The notes beneath the pieces are model-generated. The model saw only the letters and a program-made list of their open reading frames with translations, had not been told where the DNA came from and ran no database searches. Position numbers and translations under genes: made by a program. 64,000 bases of DNA from Tubulanus polymorphus (Eukaryota > Animalia > Nemertea), in contig NC_134033.1 of NCBI RefSeq assembly GCF_964204645.1, forward strand, positions 14,578,655 through 14,642,654, given 5' to 3'. Below are positions 11,525-31,616 of this stretch, one piece after another; positions within the stretch are counted from its first letter, which is position 1, and the number at the start of each line of letters is the position of its first letter.

Positions 11525-14500
11525 TTAAGATTTAGATTTAATGCAGTGAATCATTGCCCCGATTGCGCCGATATATCCTTCAAATTTCATAAACCGTGCG
11601 TATACTGGCCAGGCGAAGATCTGAAATTATGAAAAGAATATCTTAGGCAAAGCTATTTCATCGTGATCTTCATCCTGGAGAAAATCTAGATGGAGTTCTG
11701 GAGATGATAGAACAATACGGTATCCGTTTTCAAGGCGAATAACGAGAGAGCAATCCCACGACAATAAATTCGGCCAAAAATGAAAAATTCCGTAGTAAAA
11801 TGGTATATATTTCGAGCAAGGTTTCGGCTAAATATTTAGCCAAAATCGCACGCGTGATGTAATAGTTCTTTTGATGTTGGGCTGAATATATTGTGAGATT
11901 TCTCGCCTTATCCTAGATGGAACATGATTGTGTCCATCGAAGTATTCAAATAATGAAAATGATTTGTTGAATATTAGATGTTGCACACAAAGCAAAAAAA
12001 AAGTATAAAATGGTTAGATCTGCTTTTCGTTCTGTATTTTTCATTCAGCGACTTGAAATAATTACAGTTTCAAGCCGGTGTGAGGTTTTCTAGAAAGTTA
12101 CTTCGAAAATAGGAAATCCAAATAGAGATTTCCGTTTCTCGATGGGATTTAGTTGAAATCTCAAACGACGTAAGAACGATTGATTTTCACGCAGATAGAC
12201 TTCGCCGCTCGAGTCGGATCCTTCGGGGCTTTGGGACCGACTTGAGAGTGATTTCCGTGTTAGATATTAAGTATTTCGTATTCTCTCAAAAACATGCAAC
12301 TCGGGCGGAGTCTTATATTGCATTGCGGCGGGTTCGTTTATCAACTTCGAAAACTGGTAAAACTACGCGCCCGAAAGAACCCGAAAGAACCCGCGAGAGA
12401 CGAGTAAAATATAAATCCCACAATCACGAGATCGAAAAAGTTTTTTAAAATATCGCAAACTATTAAAATTTATTAAGCACCCGAATTTTCGGTTTTACAC
12501 TAAAACAATTATCAAGGAATGAAAACTTGTTCGAAAACTGAGTTGACACCGGTTATCTTACTTACATTCGTGATCATTGGCAGACGATCCCGGATGAATT
12601 GTTTGGCTATTTCGGCTTCGTCGGCGAAGAACGATCCGGCCAGGTAACACTTGTTCAATTTATAGGCTCTAGCGAATGAAAACACCGAATAGACAATGTC
12701 GCTACCGATCATATGTAATAACGATCGGGCCAAATCCTCCTTACGTGGATTCTCCAAATCTGAATCAACATGAGAAAAGGTAACTGGAAATTAAAAACAA
12801 TGTTGCGGCACACGCGTACATCAGGGGCAGATCTAGCCTACCGCTCGAAACTCGGGAGTCTTTCAGGAAAGTTTCTTCCCATCGGAGTGCGCCTATATAG
12901 AACCCGCGCACTGCTGATCGTTAGCGGTAATGGCCGACGAAATGCCCATAAATCGCTTCTGATGGCGTTTTTCAAAATTTTTTTAAGGGGAGGACGCCCA
13001 GACCCCCTTTTTGTGCCTGGATACAGGACTGAGCAGCAATCGGGAACTGAGGCTAGATCCGCCCTGTAGGTTTTTCTACGACTACGCCATTAGTTGGCAA
13101 ATTCACATGACCCTCGAAATTTCCCCTCGAAAAAGTCCCCTCATTTTGTTATGTGTGGCAAATCTCCGGCACTGGTTGGCAAACAAACCATAACGTTACG
13201 CGCAACATGTGCACAATAATCACAAACACTTTTCGTCTAGGTTTAGGGTGGTTAAGATGATATAATATCTTTTGGTAGTATGGCTTTCAGGCGATTAGTT
13301 GCCGACGCTACACCGACTTGTGGACAACTTAATAGTCTTTTTTCTCGAATTTACAGGGCATGTATAAACACGTAATAGCTTACGGTTGGGAGCCTCGTCA
13401 ATCTGATTTTAAAAAATGCCCCTAAATACGATTTATACAAGAAATAAACCTCGAGCGAAACTGTATGATGAATTTCTTAGAATTTAGGTAGAAATTTCGA
13501 TTTCTATAGAAATAGTTCAACTTCTTCTTGTGAAATAAACGAAGTTTACGTACGTTTCATTACGATATTTCCAAACGGCAGAATCTCGTAAACGAATTTC
13601 TCGTTGAAAGACGCCAAGTTCATGTTGGCGTACTCGTCTACATTAAGATCTTTGACGGTCGTCGTACAAACGGTAGAATCACCATTCCTAGCAAATTCCA
13701 TCAGTTCGTCGTAAGTCTACAGCAAACAGAAAATGACAAATTCAGTGACCATCCCAACTGGCAGGTCCCCCCAACCCTTCGAAGAATCCGAATCCTAGAT
13801 CTGCCCTTAATTTGCTAAATAGGCTATCTAAGTCGCCTCCGGTTGAGAAAAAATATCGAGCTTTTCAAATATTCAAATTATCAATATTAGTAGGAATAAA
13901 TTGCGGGGCTGTTTGTATCTATTTTCACCTCAGCTCCGGTTAAGAGTTTTCCTATAGAATGGAACGCCGAGCCTGCTACGAGAGATCCACCAATCATATT
14001 CACGGAACCATCTTCATCGACCTACGTAGAAATATTCATGGTAAATTTCAGCAGTTTATGCTGAAATACCTGTAAAAAAACCTTTGTCGGGTTTTGATAC
14101 GTAAAATGCTAAACAGTGTTAGCATGTCTGTTAAAAAGTGATGTGGACAACGATTATAGGGCCCAACAACAATCTCGACTTACAAGTATGTATCCTAGAC
14201 CGCTACCGCAGAATACTAGCAGAGCTGGAAACGTGTCTTGTTTCTCTCTCATCCTGTGTTCTTCCTCTTCTGTTACTTTGACGAATTTTACGGCATTCAT
14301 CCCGAATTCGGATCTGGTCGGCACAGTCGGGTCCTCGTACGGATACAAATACGCGGATTCATTCAATTCCGTCAACATGTAATGGAGTCCCTTTCCGAAA
14401 CACGCGAATTCGTCCGTTAGATCGTTTTGGCTACGTTTCAGAACCAGTTTTGTCAGAAAGGAACGAGAACGGGACGGTGATTTATTGAGCAGAAAAGGAG

Positions 14501-15130
14501 CTATATATGAATGAATGAATGAATGAATTTCATTTTGCAAAATAAATTGTTACAGCATCATAGAATGTTCATTATGAATAATCGCATGAAATATTTGCCA
14601 ACCTGATGCCTAGTTCACTGCCATATTCATGCAAAAATAACCATCTGCCGATCCCGGTACCAACGACCTTGACGTCTGTTCGATCATCATCTCCGATTAT
14701 CTCTTCACGAATGAAGGTCGCAGCATCGCTTAGGTCAAGGCTACTGAAGGTCACCATTTTTATCTTGACCTAAGATTTTCAAAAAAAGATTTTTATGCGG
14801 AATACCAACAGCGAAACAGGTAATGGATTGGTAACGTAAACAAAGTCAAGGATATACCGTACCTGATTTCGGCCTCCAGCGGTGTAGGCCAACTTGAACA
14901 ACGATCCTCCTAATTGTGAATGAATAGATACATAGGATTAATTTCATCTCATCCTGCAATCCCATGCATTCCAGAATCCTCTGTAAATGTGATTTTAGGA
15001 ACACGGCATGACAAAACTACTTACCTGCGTCAAAAGTATAGATCCTCTTGTCTCCAGGCAACGCCGTCGAAGGCAAAACAAGTTCCTCTTCATTAAAATA
15101 CTTTTTCATTTTGTTCTGGGTCGCCGCCAT
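11525..15130 (-). CDS. PANK4-type pantothenate kinase-like protein, copy A (~370 aa, kinase domain only)
   Basis: Exons 15025-15130, 14863-14909, 14603-14769, 14184-14430, 13929-14021, 13554-13716, 12566-12759, 11525-11620, all GT-AG and in frame. Motifs DAGGSLFKLAY, LTDEFACFGKG, FCGSG, KEDLARSLLHMIGSDI, FMKFEGYIGAIGA. Confidence 0.9.
12822..13066. mobile_element. MITE in intron 6 of copy A
   Basis: TIR CAGGGGCAGATCTAGCCT / AGGCTAGATCCGCCCTG. Related ends at ~11272 and ~13795. Confidence 0.65.
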
Positions 15131-15970
15131 TTTCTATATTGGTTAAACACATAGATATCGATTTTGTTCAGGTTCATAGTCAAAACCCGATGACGCAACT
15201 GATAATCAAACGATCAAATTAGGTTTTTAGATATTACGTGTTATCAGGGTTCAAAGTGTACATAACCAATCTCATTCAATGACTTTCAAGGACTTTTTTG
15301 AGTCCGATTTCAGCACTTTAGATGCCATCTGTTGACAAACGTAAGCACTAGAAAACCAAAATATAGACATTATTTTCTTGTATTTACTTAAAAGTATTTT
15401 CATTGTGTTCATCTGAATCCAAATTTATTGGCATTTATATTTAATAGCGTTAAAGAACTGTAAAAATGTTTTAAACGTTCCCTGAAATGATTTTACAGAT
15501 TTATATCGCACACCAATTGTATCTGTATCGAATATAGAAATATATTGTTTCCCCTTCCACATGACTGTACAAAAAATTCTACAATTTTGCCATGATTGAA
15601 TCACATTACGTAAGGGATTACGTAGCGTGGCCAAGTTACGTCATTACTGACGTAATGTGATTCAATCGTAATAATCTAAACTTATGAAATCAACCTCGGG
15701 GGGACGGACGGCGCTTCAGGGATCGTACATAACCCCTTCCTTCAACACTCTACTATATATTTTGTATCGATACAACTGTAAATATTGTGAACGAAATCCC
15801 ATCTTTAAAAAAAAACAAAAATAAAAACAATAAATTTGATCTCTACGTCGTTCCTATATAACAATTGTATAGATATGAACAATAAATCGATAGTTTTGTT
15901 AAACGCATGCGTTACTTGGTATTTTCCTATCAAGAGCACTCGCCTAATTCGAGGATTCACACACAGAGCG

Positions 15971-16055
15971 TAGACTGGTTGCCGGTCTCTACCTTCAGTT
16001 AGACTATTCTGACTGCGAATGCAGGTGGCGCAGAATTGGACAGGCGACCAGTCTA
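15971..16055. mobile_element. Small MITE
   Basis: TAGACTGGTTGCC / GGCGACCAGTCTA, flanked by near-identical 10-mers ACACAGAGCG / ATACAGAGCG. Confidence 0.55.
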
Positions 16056-16271
16056 ATACAGAGCGTTGAACAGAATAGTTTGAGAAAATGTAAAGACGGT
16101 TCGAGCCTCATAAAACATATATATAAAATACAGACCAACCCCAGAAGTGAAATAAAGAGGTAAACGATTCGGAGGAATATATTATTTCTTTATTTTTCGT
16201 ATCTCGTTGTTTTAACATTTTGAACGACGGTTCGGATTTATTTTTTTAAATTCAGCTACCCGCATTGATTT

Positions 16272-19200
16272 TTATTTCTTAGCTTGAAAATGATCTATTA
16301 TTGCACCCAGTACTCCTATATACCCTTCAAATTTGAGATACCGCGGATAAACCGGCCAGCCAACCGTCTGCAATGTGAATTAAATGAAAATGATGAGAAC
16401 TTTTGTCGTTGACAGGAATGAAACAGGAATTTAAACAGGAAAAAAAGATTAAAATTGATTAAAATGTTGAATAAACTGTGATTTTTTTTAGATTTCGCTG
16501 CATATCAAGCGGTCGCGTGTTTGATTTTGTTTTCCGGAATGAAATGAATCTGTTGAATGTGGGGTTGTGGTTCACTTTTACGTCGTACCAAGAAAAAATT
16601 GCCATCATTTATTGTCTTATGAAATAACGCAAAGAATATGGTTATCCTACTTACGTTAGTGACCGTCGGAAGTCGAGCGAGGTATTGCTTGGCTATATCA
16701 CCTTTGGCGAAAAACGATCCGGCCAGGTAACACTTATTCAGTTTATAGGCTTTAGCTAATCCGAGTACTGTCGTTATCACACTATCGCATACCATGTGTA
16801 ACAGTGACCTCGCTAGATCTTCTTTTCGTGGATTCTTTATACCTATGGATGAAAGACAAATCGGTTGAAAGGAAAGGTAGATGAGGTACCATTGATTCCG
16901 ATAGGTTATAGTTACAGTATGATACTAAACAGTCCTGCAAAATAGCAGTTGATAGACTACCCAGAGGAGGGGGGAAGAAACTTTTGGAAAAGCGCCCTTT
17001 TTGCAAATATTATTGTTATATCCAAAATACCTTTCCTTCTTCGGATATCTCAGCCAACTCACCCCCCCCCCCTCCGATTCAAATGCTGAGTAAGGCTCCT
17101 CTATTTTGACTAACAAATATTCACCATGCGATTTTTTAAGTCTGACCTTTTCGCACTATATTTCCGAATGGAAAAACCTCGAAAACGAAATCGGTTTTCT
17201 CGTTGAAAGCTTGAAGATCCATTTCGGCGTATTCACCGACAGACATATCATCAAGGGTCGTAGTACAAACACGTGAGTCTCCATTCCCGGCAAATTCCAT
17301 CAATTCCTCGTAACTCTATATAACAAAAATATACGGATAAAACTGTTGAGATCCCGAAACGGAGATATAAGCCGTCTGGACGGGTGGACATCTGGTACGG
17401 ACGCTGAGATAAATCAGGGTTCGGATAATTGAACGATTTAGTTCGTTCGACAGTACGCCTATTAGAAATACGTACGCCGTTTTTTGAAAGCTCAGATCGA
17501 AAGAAAGTATGCAACATTTCATGTTACGTCGTATATGCACGTATGCAAGTTACCTTTGCACCTGTCAGAACCTTTCCGAGTGAATGAAATGCTAAACCAG
17601 CAGCCGCAGCACCGCCTACCATGTCAACCGAACCGTCTTCATCGACCTTAACAATTCAAACAAAAGCTGCTATTTTATTTCTGCTGTAATACATTAGATA
17701 ATGTTATTATTCTGCTGTAATACATCGTTAATCGGTTTTGGAAGCTGATGCTGTTTTATGGAACCCCAGTTGTAACTTTGTGCTTTGTGTCATTCCTGTG
17801 TTTTGTCCTTTTTTATTACGAATTGTTTAAATGTCGGGCGCAAGCGTTTTGTAAGTTTTAACTGATTAAAGATTGAATTCGAATTTATAAAGTGTTCGCT
17901 GAAAACAAACCGTGACGTCACACAAAAACGCAGTTTAAATTTTTAATGTATATGCAAATGAACTGGCGTGATACAAAGCAATTGGGCATTATAAAAGTGA
18001 CGTCAAATCGCAGGAAATCAATGTTATACGTTTTATCGATGAACGCATTATTTAGTGTGATGTGGCTAGCAGGAAGCTAGAAACGATGTCGGTCGGTCAA
18101 TTAAGTGTTTTCAATTTCTTACAGCAAAGATTCCCCGCAACGACGGAACTCACCAGTATAAATCCGAGACCACTACCAAAAAACCCGAGCAGAGCCGGAA
18201 ACGAATCCTTTTTCGCTCTCATCGTCAGCTCTTCTTCTTCGGTGACTTTAACGAATGACGAGTTATTCATGCCGAGTTCGGCTCTGCTCGGTACGGTCGC
18301 GTCTTCGTACGGATGTAGATACGCCGGTTCGTCCAACTCTGTCAGCATGTAATGCAATCCTTTCCCAAAACACACGAACTCATCGGTGAAATTGTTGTCT
18401 CTGGAAATGGTAGTGGAAAAGAACTGATTATCATATTGCAGATAACGATAAGGACCTCCCGTCCGATTCTCAGGGCTAACACCCCCTTGGGGTTCCTTCT
18501 TGTCCCTTTTCTTTACAACGCTTTACAATGTAGAAGTACTCTCTTTAACATTTCTTTTTCATTTGTGTAATAGTTATGACTGTATTTTTGTAATGTACTT
18601 TTTAGTTAAGAAATAAACTATTAACAACAATCACAACCGCACTTGATGTTTGGAACAATAATCATTGTTCAAGATATAAAGATAAACTTCGTGGTATTTT
18701 GATATACAATTTTTCCTTTTTACTTGATATCGAATTTGTTGGACAGTTTCTCCATGTTTATTCGGCTGCCGATTCCGGAACCGTAGGCTGTGACGTCATC
18801 CCTCTTTCCGGTTTCGAGTATCTCCTTCTCGATGAAGTTCAAAGCATCGTCGAGGTCATGGTTGCTGAAGGTCACCATTTTAATCTTTACCTGCGCGCGC
18901 GCAGGTTTAACATAAAAAGAACGAAGGTTTTCAAGGTCGAAAATATGACGACGGGCGCATTGGAAACATGGGATATAAGGCATTGCACCTACTACGAGGT
19001 GCAATTAAACATGAACTTACCTGACTTTTGTCGTCTGAACTGACCGCGTAAGCCAGCTTGAACAAAGATCCACCTGATAATCAATTAGATAATCTACTTC
19101 AGTCAATTACCAGGAGGCAGAATTTGACAGGAACATATGGAAAGGGCATGCAGTTCAAAAAGGAAATATCCAAGCTGTACCAGGGGCCTTGAAAATTATG

Positions 19201-19732
19201 AAATTTCAGGGCATCTTAATGCAATGCCCTGGGACTTAAGTGACTAGGCCAATGTCTTGTGCAGCTTGTGCCATGAACAAAATTGCAAGCCATTGTTTTT
19301 CAAAAGACGGAGAAGAATTGCGACGGGAAGCATGTGCTCCTTGTACTCCCGTCCGGATCCACCCTTGGGGCGCTCTAATGATTGTACTTCGTGCAAATTA
19401 TTTCACACTATATTTGCAGATCAAATACATATTTTCATCGATGCTGTGTTCAAGAAAAAAACTGCCATCGTTTATTGCATCTTATCTGAATACGTAAATC
19501 GTTAAGATTGAACTCAGGAAGAAAAGGCTTTAGAACATGTTGAAGTTTGACAGTTTTCAAATGAAACCAAACCGAATACTATATCGAGAGTAATGGAACA
19601 AATGGGCAATCATCGGTCCTTAATAACATACTTACCCATATCATAGGAGAAAATCCGTTTGCCATCGGGCAGCGTCAATGGCAAAACGAGTTCCTCTTCG
19701 TTAAAGTATTTCTTGTGATTAGTTGCCGACAT
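16272..19732 (-). CDS. PANK4-type pantothenate kinase-like protein, copy B (~369 aa)
   Basis: Exons 19636-19732, 19021-19073, 18724-18890, 18154-18400, 17554-17646, 17147-17315, 16655-16842, 16272-16367. Motifs DMGGSLFKLAY, TDEFVCFGKG, FFGSG, VDMVGG, KEDLARSLLH, YLKFEGYIGVLGA. Confidence 0.9.
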
Positions 19733-20626
19733 TATGTCGTTTCTGCCTACGTCGGTGTACTGAATATCTACTACGGGTCCGGTAAGCACTTTTTCACACA
19801 ATCTCGGTGACGCCCTACTGACCGTAATGATAAAACTACACTATCACACACAACACTGATCGCGTGTGGGTTCGGAAACAATTAACTAAACTTTACCAAT
19901 CAGCGATATAACTATATAATGATATATATTGTTCATAACATGAACTTGATTCCATGATTATCTCTACTAATAATATGCGAGCATTTAAAAATCATATAAT
20001 ATGCGAGCATTTAAAAATCATATACGGTGCACTGTAATGCTTTAATTAGGCCCTATATAATTGAAGAAGTCCCATTCGCATTTGTTATTAACTAACAGCC
20101 ATCCTGAGGAGGAATGATGCCGATGGCTGTTAGTCAATAGCCGAAACGTTTTGGATTCATTCACATAAATTTTATCGTATAAAAATTCGAATCGTTGGAC
20201 TTACGGATTAGAGTGTTTTTTCGACTTCTATTGGCCGTATAGTTTCTTCGTATCTGGAAACACCGTAAAGTGTTTCTTAAAGAGATCTTTCACGAACAGG
20301 AAAATACTCTTTGATCTCGACCGCGCAGACAATTAGCCCTAACGCGTGTTGTGGTTTATATCTATTTACGTTTTTCCTATAAAATATAAATATTGCAACT
20401 CTTCGTAGAAATCCCTGAATATCATTTTTAGTACCAAAGGCTTAAAACAGGTTTCGCGCTCTCGTTAGTAGTGTCTTTCATTCCGCAGTGGAGGTCACGA
20501 TAAACTCTTTCTGTGCCATATATATCGCTAAAAAATTATTATCATGATTAGCGAGTGCATGAACGTCAAGTATTAACGCGTCGAGTGCTAGCTGTGCGAG
20601 AAACGTCGAGAAAAACTTACGCAATA
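19733..20626. promoter_or_regulatory. Probable bidirectional promoter between PanK-like copies B and C
   Basis: The two ATGs are ~0.9 kb apart, head-to-head. TATA-like TATAAAATATAAA at ~20378-20390; a 26-bp tandem duplication at ~19970-20021. Confidence 0.5.
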
Positions 20627-22784
20627 ATGGCTACAGCAGCAGCAAAGAACGTTAAGAAGTTTTTCAATGAGGAAGAACTTGAACTACCGCTGGCAATGCC
20701 TAAAGGCAAGAAGCTCTTTTCGTATGATATGGGTAAGTTTCATGGACAAAACTCCGTTGTTGCAACATCAAAATATATACCATATTTGTGTCAATTGGTA
20801 TCAAACTGTTTCCCCGCTAATTAAAAAGTCTATCATTATGTACATTGTGTATGGCGATACATACGTAGTCTCGAAGTAGAGCCAAAAAATTCGAGGACAC
20901 CCCGGTTTTTTGAAGGGCTAAGTGCTCAGTATGTTGAACTACAGCTACGACTAAAATCCTACCGAAATAGATCTATTGTTATTTCGTTAAAAATGTCTCC
21001 AGTTTTCAACCGATTTATTATATTCAGGTGGATCTTTGTTCAAGTTGGCTTACATTGTCAATGCACACGGCGAAAGTAAGGTATTTCATTATCGCGATTA
21101 AGAAGAAGTAATTGAAAAAATTAAACCAAATCCGAGTGTATAGAAAACTGCACATCACGATATTATTGTCCTAGATCATCTAATTACAAGATATTTTCTA
21201 AATTGCTGAATGTTCTATATTTCGTCTAACAAAGACAAAGGTTAAAATGGTAACCTTCGACAACAACAACCTGGAAGATGCTTTGAACTTCATTGAAAAG
21301 GAAATCTTCGGAGATACCGACCGTAAAGATATCATCGCCATCGGGTCAGGCGTCGGTAGCCGTACTTACAAGAATAAAATGGCCGACAGATTCAAAATAA
21401 AGTAATTGAGTGAATTGTGCCAAGCCGACTCCACATTTGGAAGTCGTATCCTTGTTTCGTCTACATATATATATACTTTTCGACGCAGGGACATCAAGTT
21501 AACGGACGAGTTTGTCTGTTTCGGTAAAGGATTTCACTACATGTTGAAAAACATGGACGAGTCGCAGTACGTGTATCCATACACGGATATCCCTGTTCCG
21601 ACCCGCGCCGAAATGGGCATGGGTAACGTACAGGTAACTCACGTAACAGAAGACGAAGAAAAGAAGATGAGAGCGAAGAAGGATCTATTTCCAGCCCTGC
21701 TCGGTTTCTGCGGTAGTGGTATGGCTTTTATGATTGTACGTAACTGATAGTTCTCATATAGTCTAAATCTAGATGGAATGGAAGTGGCGCATTTAAGTGA
21801 AACAATGTTTGTATGTATGATTCTATTTCCTACAGCTCAAAGAAGACGGGACGTTGGATATGGTAGGAGGGACAGCAATGGCCGGCATTGCATTCCATTC
21901 TATCGGCAGACTTTTGACCGGTGCTAAGGTATAGACCTACGTATATGTATTTATTTTGAAACAACTAACCCTTGACTCCTAAACAAATATGATCATGCTT
22001 TTTGATCTGTATAATCTTGGCAGATATTCTATTTTCCGTTACAGAGTTACGATGAACTGATGGATCTGGCTAAGAAAGGCGATTCGACCGTTTGTACGAC
22101 GACTATAGATGATCTCTCCGCAGATGGATACGCCGACATGGACATGAAGACATTCAAAAAGAAAGCGCCATTCGTTTTCGAGGTGTTCGCTTTCGGGAAT
22201 ATAGTTAGAAAAGGTCGTATAGTCTTATAGTAACGTCTTATTAAAAAAGGTCTCGAAACCTGCAAACTAGCATCATCTTAAAAATATCATAAGATCGAAA
22301 TTTCGTTGTTTGCTTTGTGATCAGTAATGCACAACTATTAAGTACTGGGTCCTGAAAGCTGACTAACGAATATCACCGCTTACTTCAGGAATTGAGAATC
22401 CGAAGAAAGAAGATATCGCGAGTTCGTTATTGCACTTGGTTGGTGACTCGATCATGCACACGTCTATGTGCATAGCAACTCCTTATAAAATGAACAAAGT
22501 TTACTACGCCGGTTCGTTTTTCAAAAATAACGACATCGTGAAACAGTACATGACCCGGCTTCCGATGATGACTGTGGTAAGTAGTTGGAATAACACTGTC
22601 CTGAGACCGGACACGGGTAGCGAAGACCACACGTTGCAGTGAAAGGTCTTCTACAAGTTCTTTTCTATGCTTTATATTTTACTTACAGATGGTTGGCTGG
22701 CCGATTCATCCACGGTTTCTGAAGTTTGAAGGATACGTCGGTGTTCTAGGGGCGGTGATAGACTATTTGCAGTCTAACAAATAA
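20627..22784 (+). CDS. PANK4-type pantothenate kinase-like protein, copy C (~372 aa)
   Basis: Exons 20627-20732, 21028-21080, 21235-21401, 21489-21735, 21836-21928, 22045-22213, 22389-22576, 22689-22784. Exons 2-8 have the same sizes and phases as in copies B and D. Confidence 0.92.
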
Positions 22785-24074
22785 TGAAGGTGAAAACCCT
22801 GGACCACGTCAACTTAGTAGTACATATATACTATGATGCAACATTTTAATACAGATGAAGCACACAGTAGATATAGTGTTTGCTATTGCAACTTAAGATG
22901 TTTGATACCAAATACCCATTCTATCAGACCTTAATTCAATTAACTTAAATTTTACTGGAAAAGTCTGTGCAAATGGCTGAGCCCCGAAATTAGCCCATCA
23001 TGTACATCTGGCCTTTCTTTATCTTTGAAATGGCGAAAACCGACTGTTTTATTATGATATAAGAGATGTTGAGGTTCGTCGTAAATATGCCAAAGAAGAA
23101 ATACAATGTACGGGTAAAACCATGATTAAGACGAATTACGTATATATAAACGGAATTACTTCGTTAAGCATGTTTTGTAATTTCTACTTTAAATAATCAA
23201 AATATTATGCATAATGTTCCTAGCCTTAGTTCGTTATTTTTTATGGTTACGAGCATTGCTAGGAAACGGTTTAAGAACGATAGCACGTTCCAGCCCCCGG
23301 CTTGGAGATGTCCTTTTCTCAAATTGTATTTATGTGTGTATATTAATTATTTGTACTTAGAGAGAATAAAGCATTCATTCATTCATTCATTCATTGAAGT
23401 CGTGTCTCTGTGATGATATTTGAGGTGTGGAAACAAATCTACGTGACCAATATCGAATATACCTGTACTGATATACTCAAGTTCTCACTCCTTTAATGAT
23501 GTATGGCATGGAAACGCACAAAAGAAAGATTCCTGTGATATCACTTAAACGGTTCTGTAAGTTCATTTTGACAACTAAATTCCACGATCGAAATGGTTTG
23601 ACGGTAAAATAGTTGTTATTCTCAAAAATGTGTTTAAACCCAAAATTGTGGTCGTGTCACCTCCTGTGATGTGGTTATATCATTTTATGTGACCACAGTC
23701 TGTGAGATCATGATCAGATCGAGACGACAAACAAACCTTACACAGACCACTCATGCGCGATCTATAGATTGACCAAATACGTCGGATTTTGATTGTTCTG
23801 GTACAAACCAGTTTGTGGCCTGTACGACAATAGGTCACGTTGATATTATGTGATGAAGGTAGTGGCCCTACTGAATGTCTGTTCTGTACACGAGAATTTC
23901 AAAATGAAACAACGGGCGGGTAGACGGTGAATTTTTCCTAGGTAATTTAAGTCCATCATTATTACATTTCCTGTGAGAAAAAAAGACCCAGTACCAGAAT
24001 AATTTGATTTGATTAGCATTTTTACAGTTTTCAGGTGCCATGTTTTTTGGTACCAGCTGGGGTCCTATTGTTGG

Positions 24075-24667
24075 ATTATTGTTCCAATTCTTTTACAATT
24101 GAATCCAAATTTTTCATGTGAAAGAAAGGAAAACGAATAGAAACAAATCTCTCGATAGAAATCACTATAACTGTGTAGTTGGGTGCGGACATTGCCTGGT
24201 AATAAAATAGGTTCCGAAATATACACAATGGAAACAATCTACTAGGCAGATAATAGAAATACTTATAGAAATAGTAAAGTGATGGACATAGTTTACTGTG
24301 TTTAGCGAATGTCAGATACGTTTCGTCACATTCTTTATAAAGTCCTAGTAATTACAAAGACTTTCAAATACCAAGGGAATCGCTCTAGCTGGATAAACAC
24401 GTAAAGTTGATCTGAAAACGCGAGAGTTATTATGAGATAGGGGAACGTGTAACGAACTGACTGATATCTGCGACACTTTATCAGTAAAATTAATGTCAGA
24501 AAGTTAAACACACTTCCCGGTGGAAGCAAGAAAACATATTTGAAGAGTCTGTTGTATTTATAAATGAAGTTGGTAAATCTTCTGAAAGCCATGATATAAT
24601 CCGGTGTCTTCACAGCAGTGCGGTATATTCTACGAGTTGTAGTGGTGATAGTGGTTAAATTATCCAT
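24075..24667 (-). pseudogene. Class A (rhodopsin-like) GPCR pseudogene, copy 1
   Basis: MDNLTTITTT...PPGSVFNFLT (TM1), LAFSD (TM2). A 5-nt deletion near 24348 relative to copy 2 shifts the frame; stops follow. Confidence 0.75.
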
Positions 24668-25633
24668 GACAAGAACAGAACTGTTTGATACGACAATCTG
24701 TGTAGTAACTGCTTCTCTCAAATTGTGTGTTACTGCAGAACCACCATTTCAAAATGCTTCCTTCACAGAACACTATATAATCAGCATCGCAACATTTCAC
24801 ACGCTCTGTTGAAATTACCCGTTACATGAGTCGCTCTGAGAGTTACTAAAAATCAAAATAAGCCAAAGCTTCATATTGAAATTCACAGCAGTTTTTAGAT
24901 TTGAATTTATACACATTGCTATTCGCGACCCAGAATTCTTATTTTATGAATGAAGTCGTGTCTCTGTGATGATATTTGAGGTGTGGAAACAAATCTACGT
25001 GACCAATATCGAATATACCTGTACTGATATACTCAAGTTCTCACTCCTTTAATGATATATGGCATGGAAACACACAAATAAGATTCTTGTGATATTACTT
25101 AAACGGTTCGGTAAGTCCATTTTGACAACTAAATGGTTTGACGGTAAAATAGTTGTTATTCTCAACATGTGTTTAAACCCAAAATTGTGGTCGTGTCACC
25201 TCCTGTGATGTGGTTATATCATTTTATGTGACCACAGTCTGTGAGATCATGATCAGATCGAGACGACAAACAAACCTTACACAGACCACTCATGCGCGAT
25301 CTATAGATTGACCAAATACGTCGGATTTTGATTGTTCTGGTACAAACCAGTTTGTGGCCTGTACGACAATAGGTCGCGTTATTGTAACGTGATGAAGGTA
25401 GTGGCCCTACTGAATGTCTGTTCTGTACACGAGAATCTCAAAATGAAACACCAGGCGGGTGGACGGGGTTTTTTTCCTAGGTGATTTAAGTCCATCATTA
25501 TAACATTTCCTGTGAGAAAAAAGACCCAGTACCAGAAGAATTTGATTTGATAGATAATAAGCATTTTTACAGTTTTCAGGTGCCATGATTTTGTGGTACC
25601 AGCTGAGATCGTATTGTTGGATCATTGCCCCAA

Positions 25634-26215
25634 TTATTTTCCAATTGAATCCAAATGTTTCATATGAAAGAAAGGAAAACGAATAGAAACAAATCTCTCG
25701 ATAGAAATCACTATAACTGCGTAGTTGGATGCAGACATTGCCTGGTAATAAAATAGGTTCCGAAATATACACAATGGAAACAATCTACTAGGCAGATAAT
25801 AGAAATACTTATAGAAATAGTAAAGTGATGGACATAGTTTACTGTGTTTGGCGAATGTCAGATACGTTTCGTCACATTCTTTATAAAGTCCTAGATAAGT
25901 AATTACAAAGTCTTTCAAATACCAAGGGAATCGCTCTAGCTGGATAAACACGTAAAGTTGATCTGAAAACGCGAGAGTTATGAGATAGGGGAACGTGAAA
26001 CGAACTGACTGATATCTGCGACACTTTATCAGCAAAATTATTGTCAGAAAGTTAAACACACTTCCCGGCGGAAGCAAGAAAACGTATTTGAAGAGTCTGT
26101 TATATTTATAAATGAAGTTGGTAAATATTCTGAAAGCCATGATATAATCCGGTGTCTTCACAGCAGTCCAGTATATTCTACGAGTTGTAGTGGTGATAGT
26201 GGTTAAACTATCCAT
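25634..26215 (-). pseudogene. Class A GPCR pseudogene, copy 2 (TM1-TM3 open, stop after the ERF motif)
   Basis: Intronless ORF with PPGSVFNFLTIILL (TM1), YLITLAFSD (TM2) and SASNYAVIVISIERFVSIRFPF (TM3, E/DRY-type). Followed by in-frame TAA/TGA and a TM4-like remnant (MLIIYQIKFFWYWVFFL). No TM5-7 found. Confidence 0.8.
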
Positions 26216-27075
26216 GACAAGAACAGAACTGTTTGATACGACAATCTGTGTTGTGACCGCTTCCCTCAAATTATGTGTTACTGCAGAACCGCCATTTCAA
26301 AATGCTTCCTTCACGGAACACTATATAATCATCTCAACACTTCACACGCTCTGTTGAAATTACTACTTACACGAGTTACTAAAAATCAAAATAAACCAAA
26401 GCTTCATATTGAAATTCACAGCAGTTTTTAGATTTGAATTTATACACATTGCTATTCGCGACCCAGAATTCTTATTTTATGAATGAAGTCGTGTTTCTGT
26501 GATGACATTTGAGGTGTGGAAACAAATCTACGTGACCAATATCGAATATACCTGTACTGATATACTCTAGTTCTCACTCCTTTTATGATATATGGCATGG
26601 AAACACACAAAAGAAAGATTCCTGTGATATCACTTAAACGGTTCGATAAGTCCATTTTGACAACTAAATTCCACTTGATCGAAATGGTTTGACGGTAAAA
26701 TAGTTGTTATTCTCAAAATGTGTTTCAACCCGAAATTTTGGTCGTGTCACCTCCTGTGATGTGGTTATATCATTTTATGTGACCACAGTCTGTGAGATCA
26801 TGATCAGATCGAGACGGCAAACAAACCTTACACAGACCACTCATGCGCGATCTATAGATTGACCAAATACGTCGGATTTTGATTGTTCTGGTACAAACCA
26901 GTTTGTGGCCTGTACGACAATAGGTCACGTTGATATTATGTGATGAAGGTAGTGGCCCTATTGAATGTCTGTTCTGTACACGAGAATTTCAAAATGAAAC
27001 AACGGGCGGGTAGACGGTGAATTTTTTCCTAGGTGATTTAAGTCCATCATTATAACATTTCCTGTGAGAAAAAAG

Positions 27076-27583
27076 TTGATACTTAACGATAGTTGTTACA
27101 TAATAATCATAGTCAGTCAAAACAATAAATTGTATAATCGTATAAATTTCGTATTTATGAAATCTAAATATATTTGAATAAAATGTCTTGATTTTATGTG
27201 AAAGTTCGGGATTTTTCTTTCATTGACTCCAGGACGTTTCGTCGTTCATCGCTTATCGCTGTGCGTTTCTTCGTTGCTCTAACTGACATGACAAAAAGTC
27301 GAAGTTTCCTGATTTTGTTGTTGTTGTTGTTATGTAACGATGGGTCTCCATCACTGATTGACAAACGCCACCTAATGTCGGGAGTATGGTACGCGAGAGC
27401 TGAGTTCGACACGCCAAAGAAAACTCTTTTGTCAGAAAGTTAAACACACTTCCCGGCGGAAGTTCTGTTATATTTATGAATGAAGTTGGTAAATCTTCTG
27501 AAAGCCATGATATAATCCGGTGTCTTCACAGCAGTCCAGTATATTCTACGAGTTGTAGTGGCGATAGTGGTTAAATTATCCAT
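27076..27583 (-). pseudogene. GPCR pseudogene, copy 3, rearranged
   Basis: Same N-terminus with a ~20-nt deletion before TM1. TM2-TM3 is replaced by ~350 bp of unrelated sequence (27076-27428). Confidence 0.7.
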
Positions 27584-27876
27584 GACAAGAACAGAACTGT
27601 TTGATACGACAATCTGTGTAGTGACCGCTTCTCTCGAATTGTATGTTACTGCAGAACCACCATTTCAAAATGCTTCCTTCACAGAACACTATATAATCAG
27701 CATCGCAACATTTCACAAGCTCTGTCGAAATTACCCGTTACATGAGTCGCTTTGAGAGTTACTAAAAATCAATCTAAAATAAACCAAAGCTTCATATTGA
27801 AATTCACAGCAGTTTTTAGATTTGAATTTATACACATTGCTATTCGCGACCCAGAATTTTTATTTCATGAATGAAG

Positions 27877-27949
27877 CATTCATTCATTCATTCATTCATT
27901 CATTCATTCATTCATTCATTCATTTATTCATTCATTCATTCATTCATTC
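27877..27949. repeat. (CATT)n microsatellite
   Basis: About 18 copies of CATT. Confidence 0.95.
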
Positions 27950-28209
27950 CAGCTTGAGGAAGTAATGGAAAACCTACTCAATAGTAAACTTACCATGTCA
28001 AGTTCATCATCAAGTTCAATTCATGGAATTCATTAAAAAAAACTACCAATATGGCAGTGGCCTCGTTGAATAAGGAAGACAGACTATTTTATATAGATGC
28101 ATTTTCCAGTATAATCAACGTTTATAACCATATGTGTACAAATGTTAATAGTATAACGATGAAAGATTTGAGTTCCGTAAAAAACCAAGGGCAGGTGCAG
28201 GAAAATCTT

Positions 28210-28352
28210 GAAGCTATTTTGGATTTGAATATACCGATAATTGTACTGAATTGACCGGCAACCAGTCTAACCCCGATATATCGATGACATAGTGCGCACA
28301 TCCTCTCAAAAAATGATTATCAAGATTTATCAAAAATAGGATAAGAGTTATG
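28210..28352. repeat. Dispersed repeat fragment, also at ~33903-34042
   Basis: Shared TTTTGGATTTGAATATA...CAACCAGTCTA..CCCGATATAT...TCTCAAAAAA...ATAAGAG(T/A)TATG. Confidence 0.7.
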
Positions 28353-29124
28353 TATTTTATTTCAAAATAACAAACGCCAAAATTCATAATTTATATCGCT
28401 TTTTTTGAAACGCTTATATTGATGACGTATTGAATACTGGCCTACATCGCACCCTTATATAGTAGTATCATAGTAGGTATCAGTAACGGCCTTTTACGGC
28501 GTCAAAAATAATGTGACGATCGTAGGCTATCAAACATAACGCATTTTGTTCTTTGTTGAAGATATCAAACGACAGGCTTCACCATAAGATTCCCCATACA
28601 AAAATACATCAGTGACGTGAGTTTGATATACGTAGATAGACTGAAAAATAGTGCAGTGTGAAAAGTGCCACGCCCTGCTTGATTATACGTTAACGACATT
28701 GAAAATCAGTTAAATCGCTTAAACGTATGTTATAGATTAATGAGCTCGCTGCAGCGTGTAAAAAATCATTTTCTGAATGTAATTATTTCTCTATTCACAC
28801 AACCTGACAGTAAGCATTTGAAATCCTATTTTTCTTTGTGTGAATTGCCCAACGGCCGAACATTTCAATAATCCAATGGATATCTTTATTTGAATGAATA
28901 GAAACAGGTTTTGCGCACGCTTTATATCATACAGTTTCGAATAATCGTATACGCCGATAATGCCCTTCAATTCACATCAAAGGACGTTACGATTAAATCT
29001 CCTTGTGACTGTTGAAGACTATTATCACAATTAGCATACCGCGCACATGTACGTCAAGTATAAAGAATCGATATCTAGTGCTAGAAGTACTACAGGCGGT
29101 GAGGAAAATATAGAAAATTCTAAA

Positions 29125-31616
29125 ATGGCCGCAGCAGCAGCAGCAGCAGCAACGAATAGTAAGAAGTTTTTCAATGAGGAAGAACTTGAACTACCGTTAG
29201 CGATGCCTAAAGGCAAGAAGCTCTTTTCGTATGATATGGGTAAGTTTCATGAACAACACTCTGTATGGATAGCAGCATATTCAATAACAAAATATTCCTG
29301 TTTTTATTTCTATCTAAATGTATTGTGTTTCATATTCTTTGTCGATTGCGGGAATTGTCATATTATGTGTCTGGAGCTGACTGGATATTTTGACTTGGAT
29401 CAATATGTACGTCATTGAACATATATTATGTATAAATGTAAGAGAAATGAAAAACATTTGAAATATTCTCACAGGCTGCACAAAGTTTCGGTTTAGGACG
29501 AACCCATCATCCATCGCCATGTGATCCCCTGATTCCATGAAACTTTTTTGTGTTCTCTACGTTCTGAATAGACTTTATTTTTCCTTTATCCATCTATCTT
29601 TTTTTACCATTATTCGCCTACCATGTTGATTTTTAGGCGGTTCATTGTTCAAGTTGGCTTACAGTGTCAATGCGGACAAAAACGATAAGGTATTTTTCAC
29701 GAAATTCTATGCAAATAAATAGACTGAATAGATTGATTATTTCTAACTTGCTGAATTTCTTGTACTTTTGTCCGACAAAGGTCAAGATTAAAATGATCAC
29801 ATTCACCAACGAAAACATGGAAGACGCTTTGAGCTTCATCGATAAAGAAATAGTTGGTAAAACCGACCATAAAGATATCATAGCCATCGGGTCGGGCGTC
29901 GGCAGCCGTACTTACAAGAAAAAGATCGCCGAAAGATTAAAAATAAAGTAAGGGCGAATTGGAACGTCATACCAAATGGGTATGTTAAGACAAGAACCCT
30001 TGTCTAACTACGCCACTTTATATTCTCGTGGTGTACACATCTAAATGCAACATTTATCATTCACAAATAAACAATCTAGAATTTCGAACTCTCGCAAGTG
30101 ATCATCGACAGAAGTGAGAGTTCGAAAAGTCGAATCCTGAAATTCAATTTTTGAATGATATATAGATTTTCATTTTGAATTGGTAACCAACATTGTTTTT
30201 ATTGTAAATATTATTACATTAGATTTTCCACGTTCCACGTTTGAGTTTGGCTATTCTGATTATGTTAGCGATTTTCTGTTCGACATACAGGGACATCAAG
30301 TTAACGGACGAGTTTATCTGTTTCGGCAAAGGATTTCACTACATGTTGAAAAACATGGACGAGTCGCAGTACGTGCATCCATACACGGATATCCCTGTTC
30401 CGTCTCGCGCCGACATGGGCATGGGTAACTTACAGATAACTCACGTTACCGAGGATGAAGAAAAGAAGATGAGAGAGAAGAAGGATCTGTTTCCAGCCCT
30501 GCTCGGTTGCTGCGGTAGCGGTATGACTTTTATACTTGTAAGTGCGCGATTCGAATCATATCGAGGACGATAGTAATGATAGTACATGTAGTTACTGAAA
30601 ATGGAGTAATGATTCCGTTTTATATAGGCACAAGAAGACGGTACAATTGACATGGTCGGAGGTTCAGCAATGGCCGGGCTCTCATTCCATTCCATCGGAA
30701 AACTTCTAACCGGTGCAAAGGTATATATATGATCATTTGAAACGAGTAACATTAAAAACCAAAACATGACGAATGCCCTTAACTTGAAGTCTATAGATCC
30801 TCCAGTGCAAACTTGAGCTCACTAGGACAGGTGCACGTGGAATCAGGAATCTGTCTCCACGAGTGGCTCCGGTCGAAATGTATGTTCTATTTCTCCCTAA
30901 CAGAGTTACGATGAACTGATGGATCTGGCTAAGAAAGGCGATTCGACCGTTTGTACGACGACCATGGACGATTTCTCTGTAGAAGAATACGCCGACTTGG
31001 ACATGAAAGCTTACAAAGAGAAGGCTGCGTTCGTTTTTGAAGTGTTCCCATTCGGGAATGTTATTCGAAAAGGTATTAATCTAAGCAAGGTATAATTGGC
31101 ATATTTCCTAAAATCAAATCGATTCGAGAGCTGTAAATACATTGTATAAACCGTTATATACACAATATAGGAATCGAGAATCCGAAAAAAGAAGACGTAG
31201 CTAGTTCGTTACTACATTTAGTTGGTGATTCCATCGCACACTCGACCATGAATCTAACGAGTCCTCATAAATTGAACAAAGTTTACCTCGCCGGTTCGTT
31301 TTTCAAAAATAACGACACATTGAAAGCGTACTTGGCGCGGCTTCCCTTGGTCACAGTGGTAAGTAGAGGAACAGGTTGGAGTTAGGCGGCATCGGAACGT
31401 CGGGCGCACTTCTGAATACATAGAATGCACGGGGACATAACGCGTTTGGTTGTGTGTGTTAGTAGCCGTTCATGTCACTGAATCATCGTTTTTAAGATAA
31501 TTTCAATCTATTTCTTACAGATGGTTGGCTGGCCGATTCATCCGCGGTATTTGAAGTTTGAAGGCTACATCGGCGTCCTAGGGGCGGTGATTGACCACTT
31601 GCAGTCTAGCAAATAA
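29125..31616 (+). CDS. PANK4-type pantothenate kinase-like protein, copy D (~375 aa)
   Basis: Exons 29125-29239, 29637-29689, 29781-29947, 30291-30537, 30628-30720, 30904-31072, 31171-31358, 31521-31616. Closest paralog of copy C; N-terminal poly-Ala encoded by (GCA)n. Confidence 0.92.

Follow-up and report, generated by a model that had tools for sequence, protein, structure and literature searches.

What becomes of a pantothenate kinase (PanK) fold when the residues that transfer phosphate are kept while those that hold pantothenate are replaced? The question is raised by four neighbouring genes, here called A to D, which lie in a stretch of 64,000 nucleotides (the window) on contig C9 of the 268-Mb assembly of the ribbon worm Tubulanus polymorphus (Nemertea). 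In this analysis, which compared their predicted proteins with PanKs of known structure and with the remaining copies in the same genome, we came to the view that the cluster may encode still-catalytic PanK-fold kinases whose acceptor differs from pantothenate. We give this proposal, which is drawn from the aligned sequences, a probability of roughly 45%. It fits the observations best because the catalytic skeleton is conserved among proteins that are only 35% identical, because the genes are under purifying selection and because every pantothenate contact has changed. The cluster forms part of a very divergent clade of the Fumble, or type II PanK, fold that appears to be restricted to nemerteans.

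Conserved and altered residues of the active site

Residues are numbered as in human PANK3, with the 8-residue tag offset of the 5kpr chain removed. The phmmer alignment of gene B with PANK3 is ungapped between the strand that precedes the GSG loop and a point past Arg207, and it places Phe179, Ser182, Gly185 and Met197 of gene B on Asn189, Ser192, Ser195 and Arg207, respectively. Genes A, B, C and D all have Met at position 207, whereas position 195 is occupied by Gly, Gly, Ala and Thr and position 189 by Phe, Phe, Phe and Cys. The same assignment was obtained in an alignment of the four genes and in a 12-row alignment with five canonical sequences (two each from plants and fungi, and the one that the worm itself encodes), and it agrees with the residues that the original prediction had read at these three positions. 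In the relatives, position 207 is Met in P0003 and P0012 and Ile in P0002, and the position of Ser195 is Gly in these others. Arg207 is missing from every copy of the family whose sequence spans the position.

The motifs of the phosphate-transfer machinery that had been claimed as retained, the P-loop DxGGSLxK, TDEF, the GSG loop and the C-terminal EGYxG, were found in all four cluster genes. Among the seven aligned family members, the P-loop, the Asp-Glu pair and GSG are invariant, the exception being a homologue from Tara Oceans that has Ala for the final Gly of GSG. The equivalents of Asp17, Lys24, Asp137, Glu138 and Ser192 do not vary between members with as little as 35% identity. Moreover, 25 of the 93 columns that are invariant in the five canonical PanKs are also unchanged in all seven members. 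In the N-terminal part these are the Asp, Gly-Gly, Leu and Lys of the P-loop, two Gly of the TGGGA loop, Asp137-Glu138, Pro184 and Gly191-Ser192; further on they comprise Gly210, Gly215, the Leu-Thr before the helix, the Gly of KGD, Tyr258, Gly273, the Glu-Asp of KEDLAR, Gly321 and three C-terminal Gly or Ala. As judged from the alignment, the 25 columns are the phosphate, catalytic and adenosine positions of the ASKHA fold, i.e., its nucleotide-binding and catalytic skeleton.

A different set of residues is altered in all seven members, namely Asn189, Val194, Ser195, Arg207, Gly216, Thr217, Tyr254, the NNIG helix, Trp341 and His353. Tyr254 is either replaced or deleted, while Tyr258 is retained, and the positions of Arg306, Thr209 and Trp341 carry other residues. 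In the sequence alignment, the flap is remodelled by an insertion of seven residues directly before the FGN motif, and this insertion contains a Glu that is invariant in the family. In human PANK3 (HsPanK3), pantothenate is hydrogen-bonded by Glu138, Ser195, Arg207, Val268' and Ala269'. Two interactions, Asp137-Tyr258' and Glu138-Tyr254', stabilise the site, and the second of them is important to the active state (PMC8366970). The flexible flap 250'-269' of the opposite protomer forms the pocket for the gem-dimethyl group, and Arg306', Thr209 and Trp341' link the protomers (PMC8693618, PMC6199309). Read against these structures, the alignments indicate that the pantothenate pocket is remodelled in the whole family, with Ser195, Arg207, Tyr254 and the flap before FGN changed in every member. 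The altered loop strings quoted in the original prediction are present; the register given for one of them, TGGGA replaced by G(T/S)G(I/V)G, was off by one. MAFFT pairs G-S-G-I-G of the family with A-T-G-G-G, and hence only the middle Gly and the flanks of this loop change.

Fold and quaternary structure

A search against the Pfam family Fumble (PF03630), which had been suggested as a check, placed the proteins well inside the family. Scored at full length against a curated cut-off of 28.5 bits, the protein of gene B reached 122.6 bits (E 2.6e-35), P0002 133.7 bits and P0003 158.3 bits. Fumble was the sole Pfam match, and the proteins are stand-alone, with about 370 amino acids (aa) and an end about 15 residues past the EGY motif. 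Isolated exons scored 12-30 bits against Fumble at colinear profile positions (29.8 bits for exon 4 of gene A). Exon profiles gave weak but colinear PANK matches in the PDB, where exon 4 alone had no match at E up to 1, and the full-length protein of gene B matched PANK3 (phmmer, PDB 5KPR) at E 3.4e-15. The AlphaFold model of gene B, which was built from an alignment of 9 sequences, had a predicted local distance difference test (pLDDT) score of 86 and a predicted template modelling (pTM) score of 0.86. Foldseek matched it to yeast CAB1 first, followed by human PANK3, PANK2 and PANK1 and the Staphylococcus aureus type II PanK, at template modelling (TM) scores of 0.6-0.83 and E from 1e-21 to 1e-15. 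At the level of the model, the type II PanK fold of gene B is confirmed.

Modelled as two copies, gene B reached an interaction score (ipSAE) of 0.75 against 0.00 for the best of three controls, a value that favours binding but in which solved PanK dimers may be remembered. Contacts agreed between runs by at least 79%, and the pLDDT of the partner was at least 75. In a microbial calibration, 21 of 30 solved homodimers attained the mark for a dimer, as did none of 23 single chains; in eukaryotes 17 of 29 solved homodimers reached it, and only one of the seven that had no older solved relative. The confident part of the predicted interface consists of residues 182-183 (GSG), 197-204 (the Met and the next strand), 206-215, 267-274 (where the flap ends) and the helix 292-308. 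In the model this is the arrangement of PanKs, which may likewise reflect memory of their solved dimers.

Evolution and distribution of the family

Genes C and D share 79% amino-acid identity, and their synonymous divergence (dS) was 0.37-0.49. The ratio of nonsynonymous to synonymous divergence (dN/dS) of this pair was 0.24-0.34 by three methods, distant from the value near 1 that had been named, in combination with a lack of expression, as refuting the original prediction. In the remaining pairs of the cluster dS was saturated, and dN/dS was lower than in C-D. The cluster genes are under purifying selection.

A Fumble scan, a profile search and tblastn together showed that the family has at least seven genes in the T. 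polymorphus genome (Table 1). P0003 shares the exon organisation of the cluster. P0002, which lies on another chromosome, looks like an old retrocopy that was kept under constraint and, if it is one, it must have been transcribed in the germline in the past. The copy on contig C6 could be either a pseudogene or a genuine pseudokinase. Additionally, a contig of a Tara Oceans metatranscriptome (JGI 3300018951, ERR1711860) encodes a protein of 375 aa that is 62% identical to P0003 and also has Met at position 207; its source was presumably a planktonic stage of a nemertean or a related animal. This transcript, the three RefSeq isoforms of gene D and the retrocopy-like P0002 are indirect hints of expression.

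In a maximum-likelihood tree, which contained no PANK4 sequence, genes A-D, P0002, P0003 and the Tara homologue formed one clade with a support of 100/100, and the branch from this clade to the canonical PanKs measured about 1.9 changes per site. The topology within the clade was ((P0003, Tara), (P0002, ((A,B),(C,D)))). Gene A had the longest tip among the four cluster genes, with a terminal branch of 0.46 compared with 0.15 for gene B.

Searches beyond the genome returned little. The exon 4 profile, which was run against 1.84 billion representatives, gave three matches, all from T. polymorphus, and the word-index searches found only T. polymorphus paralogues, the one Tara transcript and a few PanKs from plants and fungi. 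Four further distant PanKs were found in a metagenome scan, while the ESM Atlas yielded Fumble clusters only. Neither P0001 nor P0004 had an exact match in assemblies, and literature searches found no description of this PanK-like family. The family appears to be confined to one animal lineage, with the reservation that other nemertean genomes are possibly missing from the collections searched.

Organisation of the locus

A tblastn search with the protein of gene C against the window returned exactly four colinear sets of eight exons and no other matches. All introns (28 of 28) are GT-AG, the intron phases are identical in genes A-D, and each frame has one terminal stop. The translations of A, B and C match the RefSeq proteins letter for letter, and gene D read from the ATG at 29125 equals the RefSeq isoform X1 minus 26 N-terminal residues. 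The four intact eight-exon frames that had been described from the DNA were confirmed. RefSeq lists three isoforms of this gene: X1 (401 aa); X2 (340 aa), in which an alternative first exon removes the Asp of the P-loop; and X3 (322 aa), in which an alternative donor truncates the protein after exon 6. The RefSeq names in the cluster are either "uncharacterized" or, for genes C and D, "4'-phosphopantetheine phosphatase-like".

Genes B and C are arranged head to head, and the spacer between them is a possible shared bidirectional promoter, as far as the arrangement of the two start codons can suggest. Between genes C and D there are three tandem copies of a unit of about 1.55 kb with 95-98% identity, whose minus strand has an open frame with a weak match to rhodopsin-type G-protein-coupled receptors (7tm_1, E 0.008). 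They are probably recently duplicated receptor fragments. The window also contains microsatellites of the TTCA type, which appear as F-I-H-S repeats in open reading frame listings; they are non-coding simple repeats.

Table 1. Genes of the cluster, further members of the family and other features mentioned in the text (positions refer to the window unless a contig or locus is named)
Feature	Position	Strand	Length	Identifier	Exons	Codon at Arg207 position	Catalytic Glu codon	Remarks
Gene A	11525-15130	-	370 aa	XP_074657680; P0005	15025-15130, 14863-14909, 14603-14769, 14184-14430, 13929-14021, 13554-13716, 12566-12759, 11525-11620	13995-13997 (Met)	14409-14411	
Gene B	16272-19732	-	369 aa	XP_074658065; P0001	19636-19732, 19021-19073, 18724-18890, 18154-18400, 17554-17646, 17147-17315, 16655-16842, 16272-16367	17620-17622 (Met)	18379-18381	
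Spacer B-C	19733-20626		894 bp					Between head-to-head start codons
Gene C	20627-22784	+	372 aa	XP_074658185; P0004	20627-20732, 21028-21080, 21235-21401, 21489-21735, 21836-21928, 22045-22213, 22389-22576, 22689-22784	21860-21862 (Met)	21508-21510	
Tandem repeats	23284-27645							Between genes C and D
TTCA-type microsatellites	27822-27965; about 14480-14540							The second in an intron of gene A
Gene D	29125-31616, or from the upstream ATG at 29047	+	375 aa, or 401 aa	XP_074658004 (isoform X1)	29125(29047)-29239, 29637-29689, 29781-29947, 30291-30537, 30628-30720, 30904-31072, 31171-31358, 31521-31616	30652-30654 (Met)	30310-30312	
Family member	Contig C3, L001:1423-2517		365 aa	P0002		Ile		Intronless, intact; 45% identical to gene B
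Family member	Contig C11			P0003	Eight, boundaries at about the same protein positions as in the cluster	Met		
Degenerate copy	Contig C6, L016:3437-4856					Tyr		GSG loop reads G-S-T
Canonical PanK	Contig C2, about 34.9-37.4 kb							
DUF89/ARMT1-like gene	Contig C1, 8.86 Mb			L012/L013/L014				

A proposed kinase for another acceptor and its alternatives

If the cluster encodes catalytic kinases, ATP-Mg would be bound and phosphate transferred by the Asp and Lys of the P-loop, the Asp-Glu pair and the serine of GSG. The working form would be a dimer in which the flap of one chain closes the acceptor pocket of its partner, as in PANK3. This pocket would have been rebuilt by the change of Arg207 to Met (Ile in one paralogue) and of Ser195 to Gly, Ala or Thr, by the loss of Tyr254 and by the seven-residue insertion in the flap. 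Because of this rebuilding, the preferred acceptor is probably not pantothenate but another small molecule that has a hydroxyl group and lacks the carboxylate or carbonyl bound by Arg207. The synthesis of coenzyme A (CoA) would be covered by the PanK of the same genome, which is fully canonical, and the cluster genes are therefore not needed for it. It is possible, and we put it forward tentatively from the sequences, that these are the first eukaryotic Fumble-family kinases with a small-molecule acceptor beyond pantothenate and pantetheine, perhaps an alcohol, neutral or cationic, from the specialised metabolism of nemerteans. Such a switch of acceptor would rest on the change of Arg207 to Met, the rebuilt flap across the dimer and the family-invariant Glu in the flap insertion.

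Several observations weigh against a catalytic kinase with a new acceptor. Some residues that are invariant in canonical enzymes are lost, namely Asn189, Gly216-Thr217 in the GGGT loop and, in the TGGGA loop, the middle Gly; if they are needed for the handling of Mg-ATP, the proteins may not catalyse. Also absent is Tyr254', whose bond to Glu138 matters for the active state of PANK3 (PMC8366970). As for the acceptor, pantothenate may still be phosphorylated to some extent because PANK3 with the R207W substitution keeps some activity. Moreover, Arg332, Arg347 and Lys350 (numbering of gene B) are invariant in the family, and one of them may supply a substitute basic residue in the pocket.

Taken further, the first of these points leads to proteins that are not enzymes at all, i.e., pseudo-PanKs that keep the fold, and perhaps nucleotide binding and dimerisation, and serve as regulators or scaffolds, for instance in pairs formed among themselves or with the canonical PanK. 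We consider this unlikely, and yet it has to be taken seriously because residues beyond the pocket that are invariant in canonical enzymes were lost (every member lacks Asn189, Gly216/Thr217, Tyr254, Arg306, Trp341 and the NNIG helix), so that the handling of ATP or the active conformation may suffer. The predicted dimer interface of gene B would suit such a role, and in the C6 copy even the third GSG residue is lost. However, pseudoenzymes usually lack the catalytic base or residues of the phosphate loop, and it is precisely Asp17, Lys24, Asp137, Glu138 and Ser192 whose equivalents have stayed constant here despite identities that fall to 35%. There are precedents for a non-catalytic PanK in amniote PANK4 (PMC8861153) and in apicomplexan PanK2 (PMC8366970), and PfPanK2 pairs with PfPanK1 (PMC8366970; preprint 10.64898/2026.01.22.701186). 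The logic of complementary half-sites does not fit the cluster, however, in which, unlike in PfPanK2, Asp137 is kept and Tyr254 lost. Somewhat less probable, in our opinion, but likewise to be taken seriously, is that the proteins are pantothenate (or pantetheine) kinases of low affinity that escape feedback by acetyl-CoA and provide extra, unregulated capacity for CoA. The conserved catalytic machinery would agree with this, as would the RefSeq names of two of the genes, which come from the PANK4 family. In a 2026 preprint (10.64898/2026.01.22.701186, citing Yao et al. 2019), HsPanK3 R207W is described as having a lower affinity for pantothenate and acetyl-CoA and as being less catastrophic than E138V, and the equivalent PfPanK1 R295W as still active; both variants thus retain activity. 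On the other hand, not one contact but all of those described for pantothenate differ, i.e., Ser195, Arg207, Val268'/Ala269' in the flap with its seven-residue insertion and Tyr254'. The family stands on a very long branch outside the plant and fungal PanKs and that of the worm, and seven copies for a housekeeping step would be unusual.

That the genes are decaying duplicates or annotation artefacts without a function is essentially excluded. A degenerate appearance was found in the C6 member, which lies outside the window. The cluster genes are not decaying because their frames are intact (four of four, across eight exons with conserved phases) and because dN/dS of the C-D pair is well under 1 at an unsaturated dS; in addition, the motifs are conserved across deep paralogy and a related transcript is present in a metatranscriptome. 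The original prediction had proposed a neofunctionalised kinase rather than decay and had treated the four genes as a novelty of their own. The lack of decay and the remodelled pocket are borne out and make a neofunctionalised kinase a candidate, whereas the second part has to be widened because the family comprises at least seven genes in the genome.

Significance

The genes described here represent a divergent subfamily within a known fold, apparently limited to one lineage, and they are already in RefSeq as uncharacterised or PANK4-like proteins. To our knowledge, every characterised member of the type II PanKs is either a pantothenate kinase or, in the case of PANK4, has a dead kinase domain. 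If the proposed change of acceptor is true, a clade that keeps the phosphotransfer residues under purifying selection and has replaced every described contact to pantothenate would show, as an experiment of nature, how an ASKHA kinase can come to use another acceptor. Ribbon worms are known for their unusual small-molecule chemistry, and the cluster could point to an unrecognised metabolite in them. Should the proteins be pseudokinases, they would represent a second, independent route to a pseudo-PanK in which the catalytic Glu is retained. In both cases the practical value stays modest as long as no activity is known.

Comparison with known pantothenate kinases

With human PANK1-3 the cluster shares the Pfam family, the predicted fold, the P-loop, Asp137-Glu138, GSG with Ser192, the strand with Gly321, EGY and Tyr258, and the symmetric dimer predicted for gene B would involve the same helix and flap region. 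It differs from them in an identity of only about 20%, in Met for Arg207, Gly, Ala or Thr for Ser195 and Phe or Cys for Asn189, in the absence of Tyr254, in other residues for Arg306 and Trp341, in the flap insertion of seven residues and in the segment that joins the catalytic helix to the GSG strand, which is longer by about 14 residues according to a count made by hand. The type II PanK of S. aureus (CoaA) is, like the cluster proteins, a stand-alone type II protein and matches the gene B model at a TM of 0.8 by target. The identity is only about 15%, however, and this enzyme is a proven kinase of pantothenate and pantothenamides; it is insensitive to feedback by CoA.

Amniote PANK4 resembles the cluster in the loss of Arg207 (PMC8861153), and its family lends genes C and D their RefSeq name. 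In contrast to the cluster, in which Glu138 is kept and DUF89 is absent, PANK4 has lost Glu138 and has a C-terminal DUF89 phosphatase domain fused to its pseudo-PanK. The sole DUF89/ARMT1-like gene found in the T. polymorphus genome has no PanK domain within 10 kb, and the classical PANK4 fusion may therefore be absent from the worm. The apicomplexan PanK1 and PanK2 are likewise type II paralogues that each lack part of the active-site residues, and their composite site spans the dimer (PMC8366970). One of the two has lost Asp137 and the other Tyr254/258, so that their losses complement each other, and the substrate is still pantothenate. The pattern of apicomplexan PanK2, in which Asp137 is lost and Tyr254 and Tyr258 are kept, is reversed in the cluster family, where Asp137 is kept and Tyr254 lost. 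Pairing among the paralogues of the cluster cannot rebuild a canonical site because all of them share the same losses.

A contrast is provided by the canonical PanK of T. polymorphus, which belongs to the same genome and the same fold family. All of the hallmark residues are retained in it, i.e., Asp-Glu, Asn189, Ser195, Arg207, the GGGT loop, Tyr254 and Tyr258. It clusters with the plant and fungal PanKs and not with genes A-D, and its exon boundaries are unlike those of the cluster genes.

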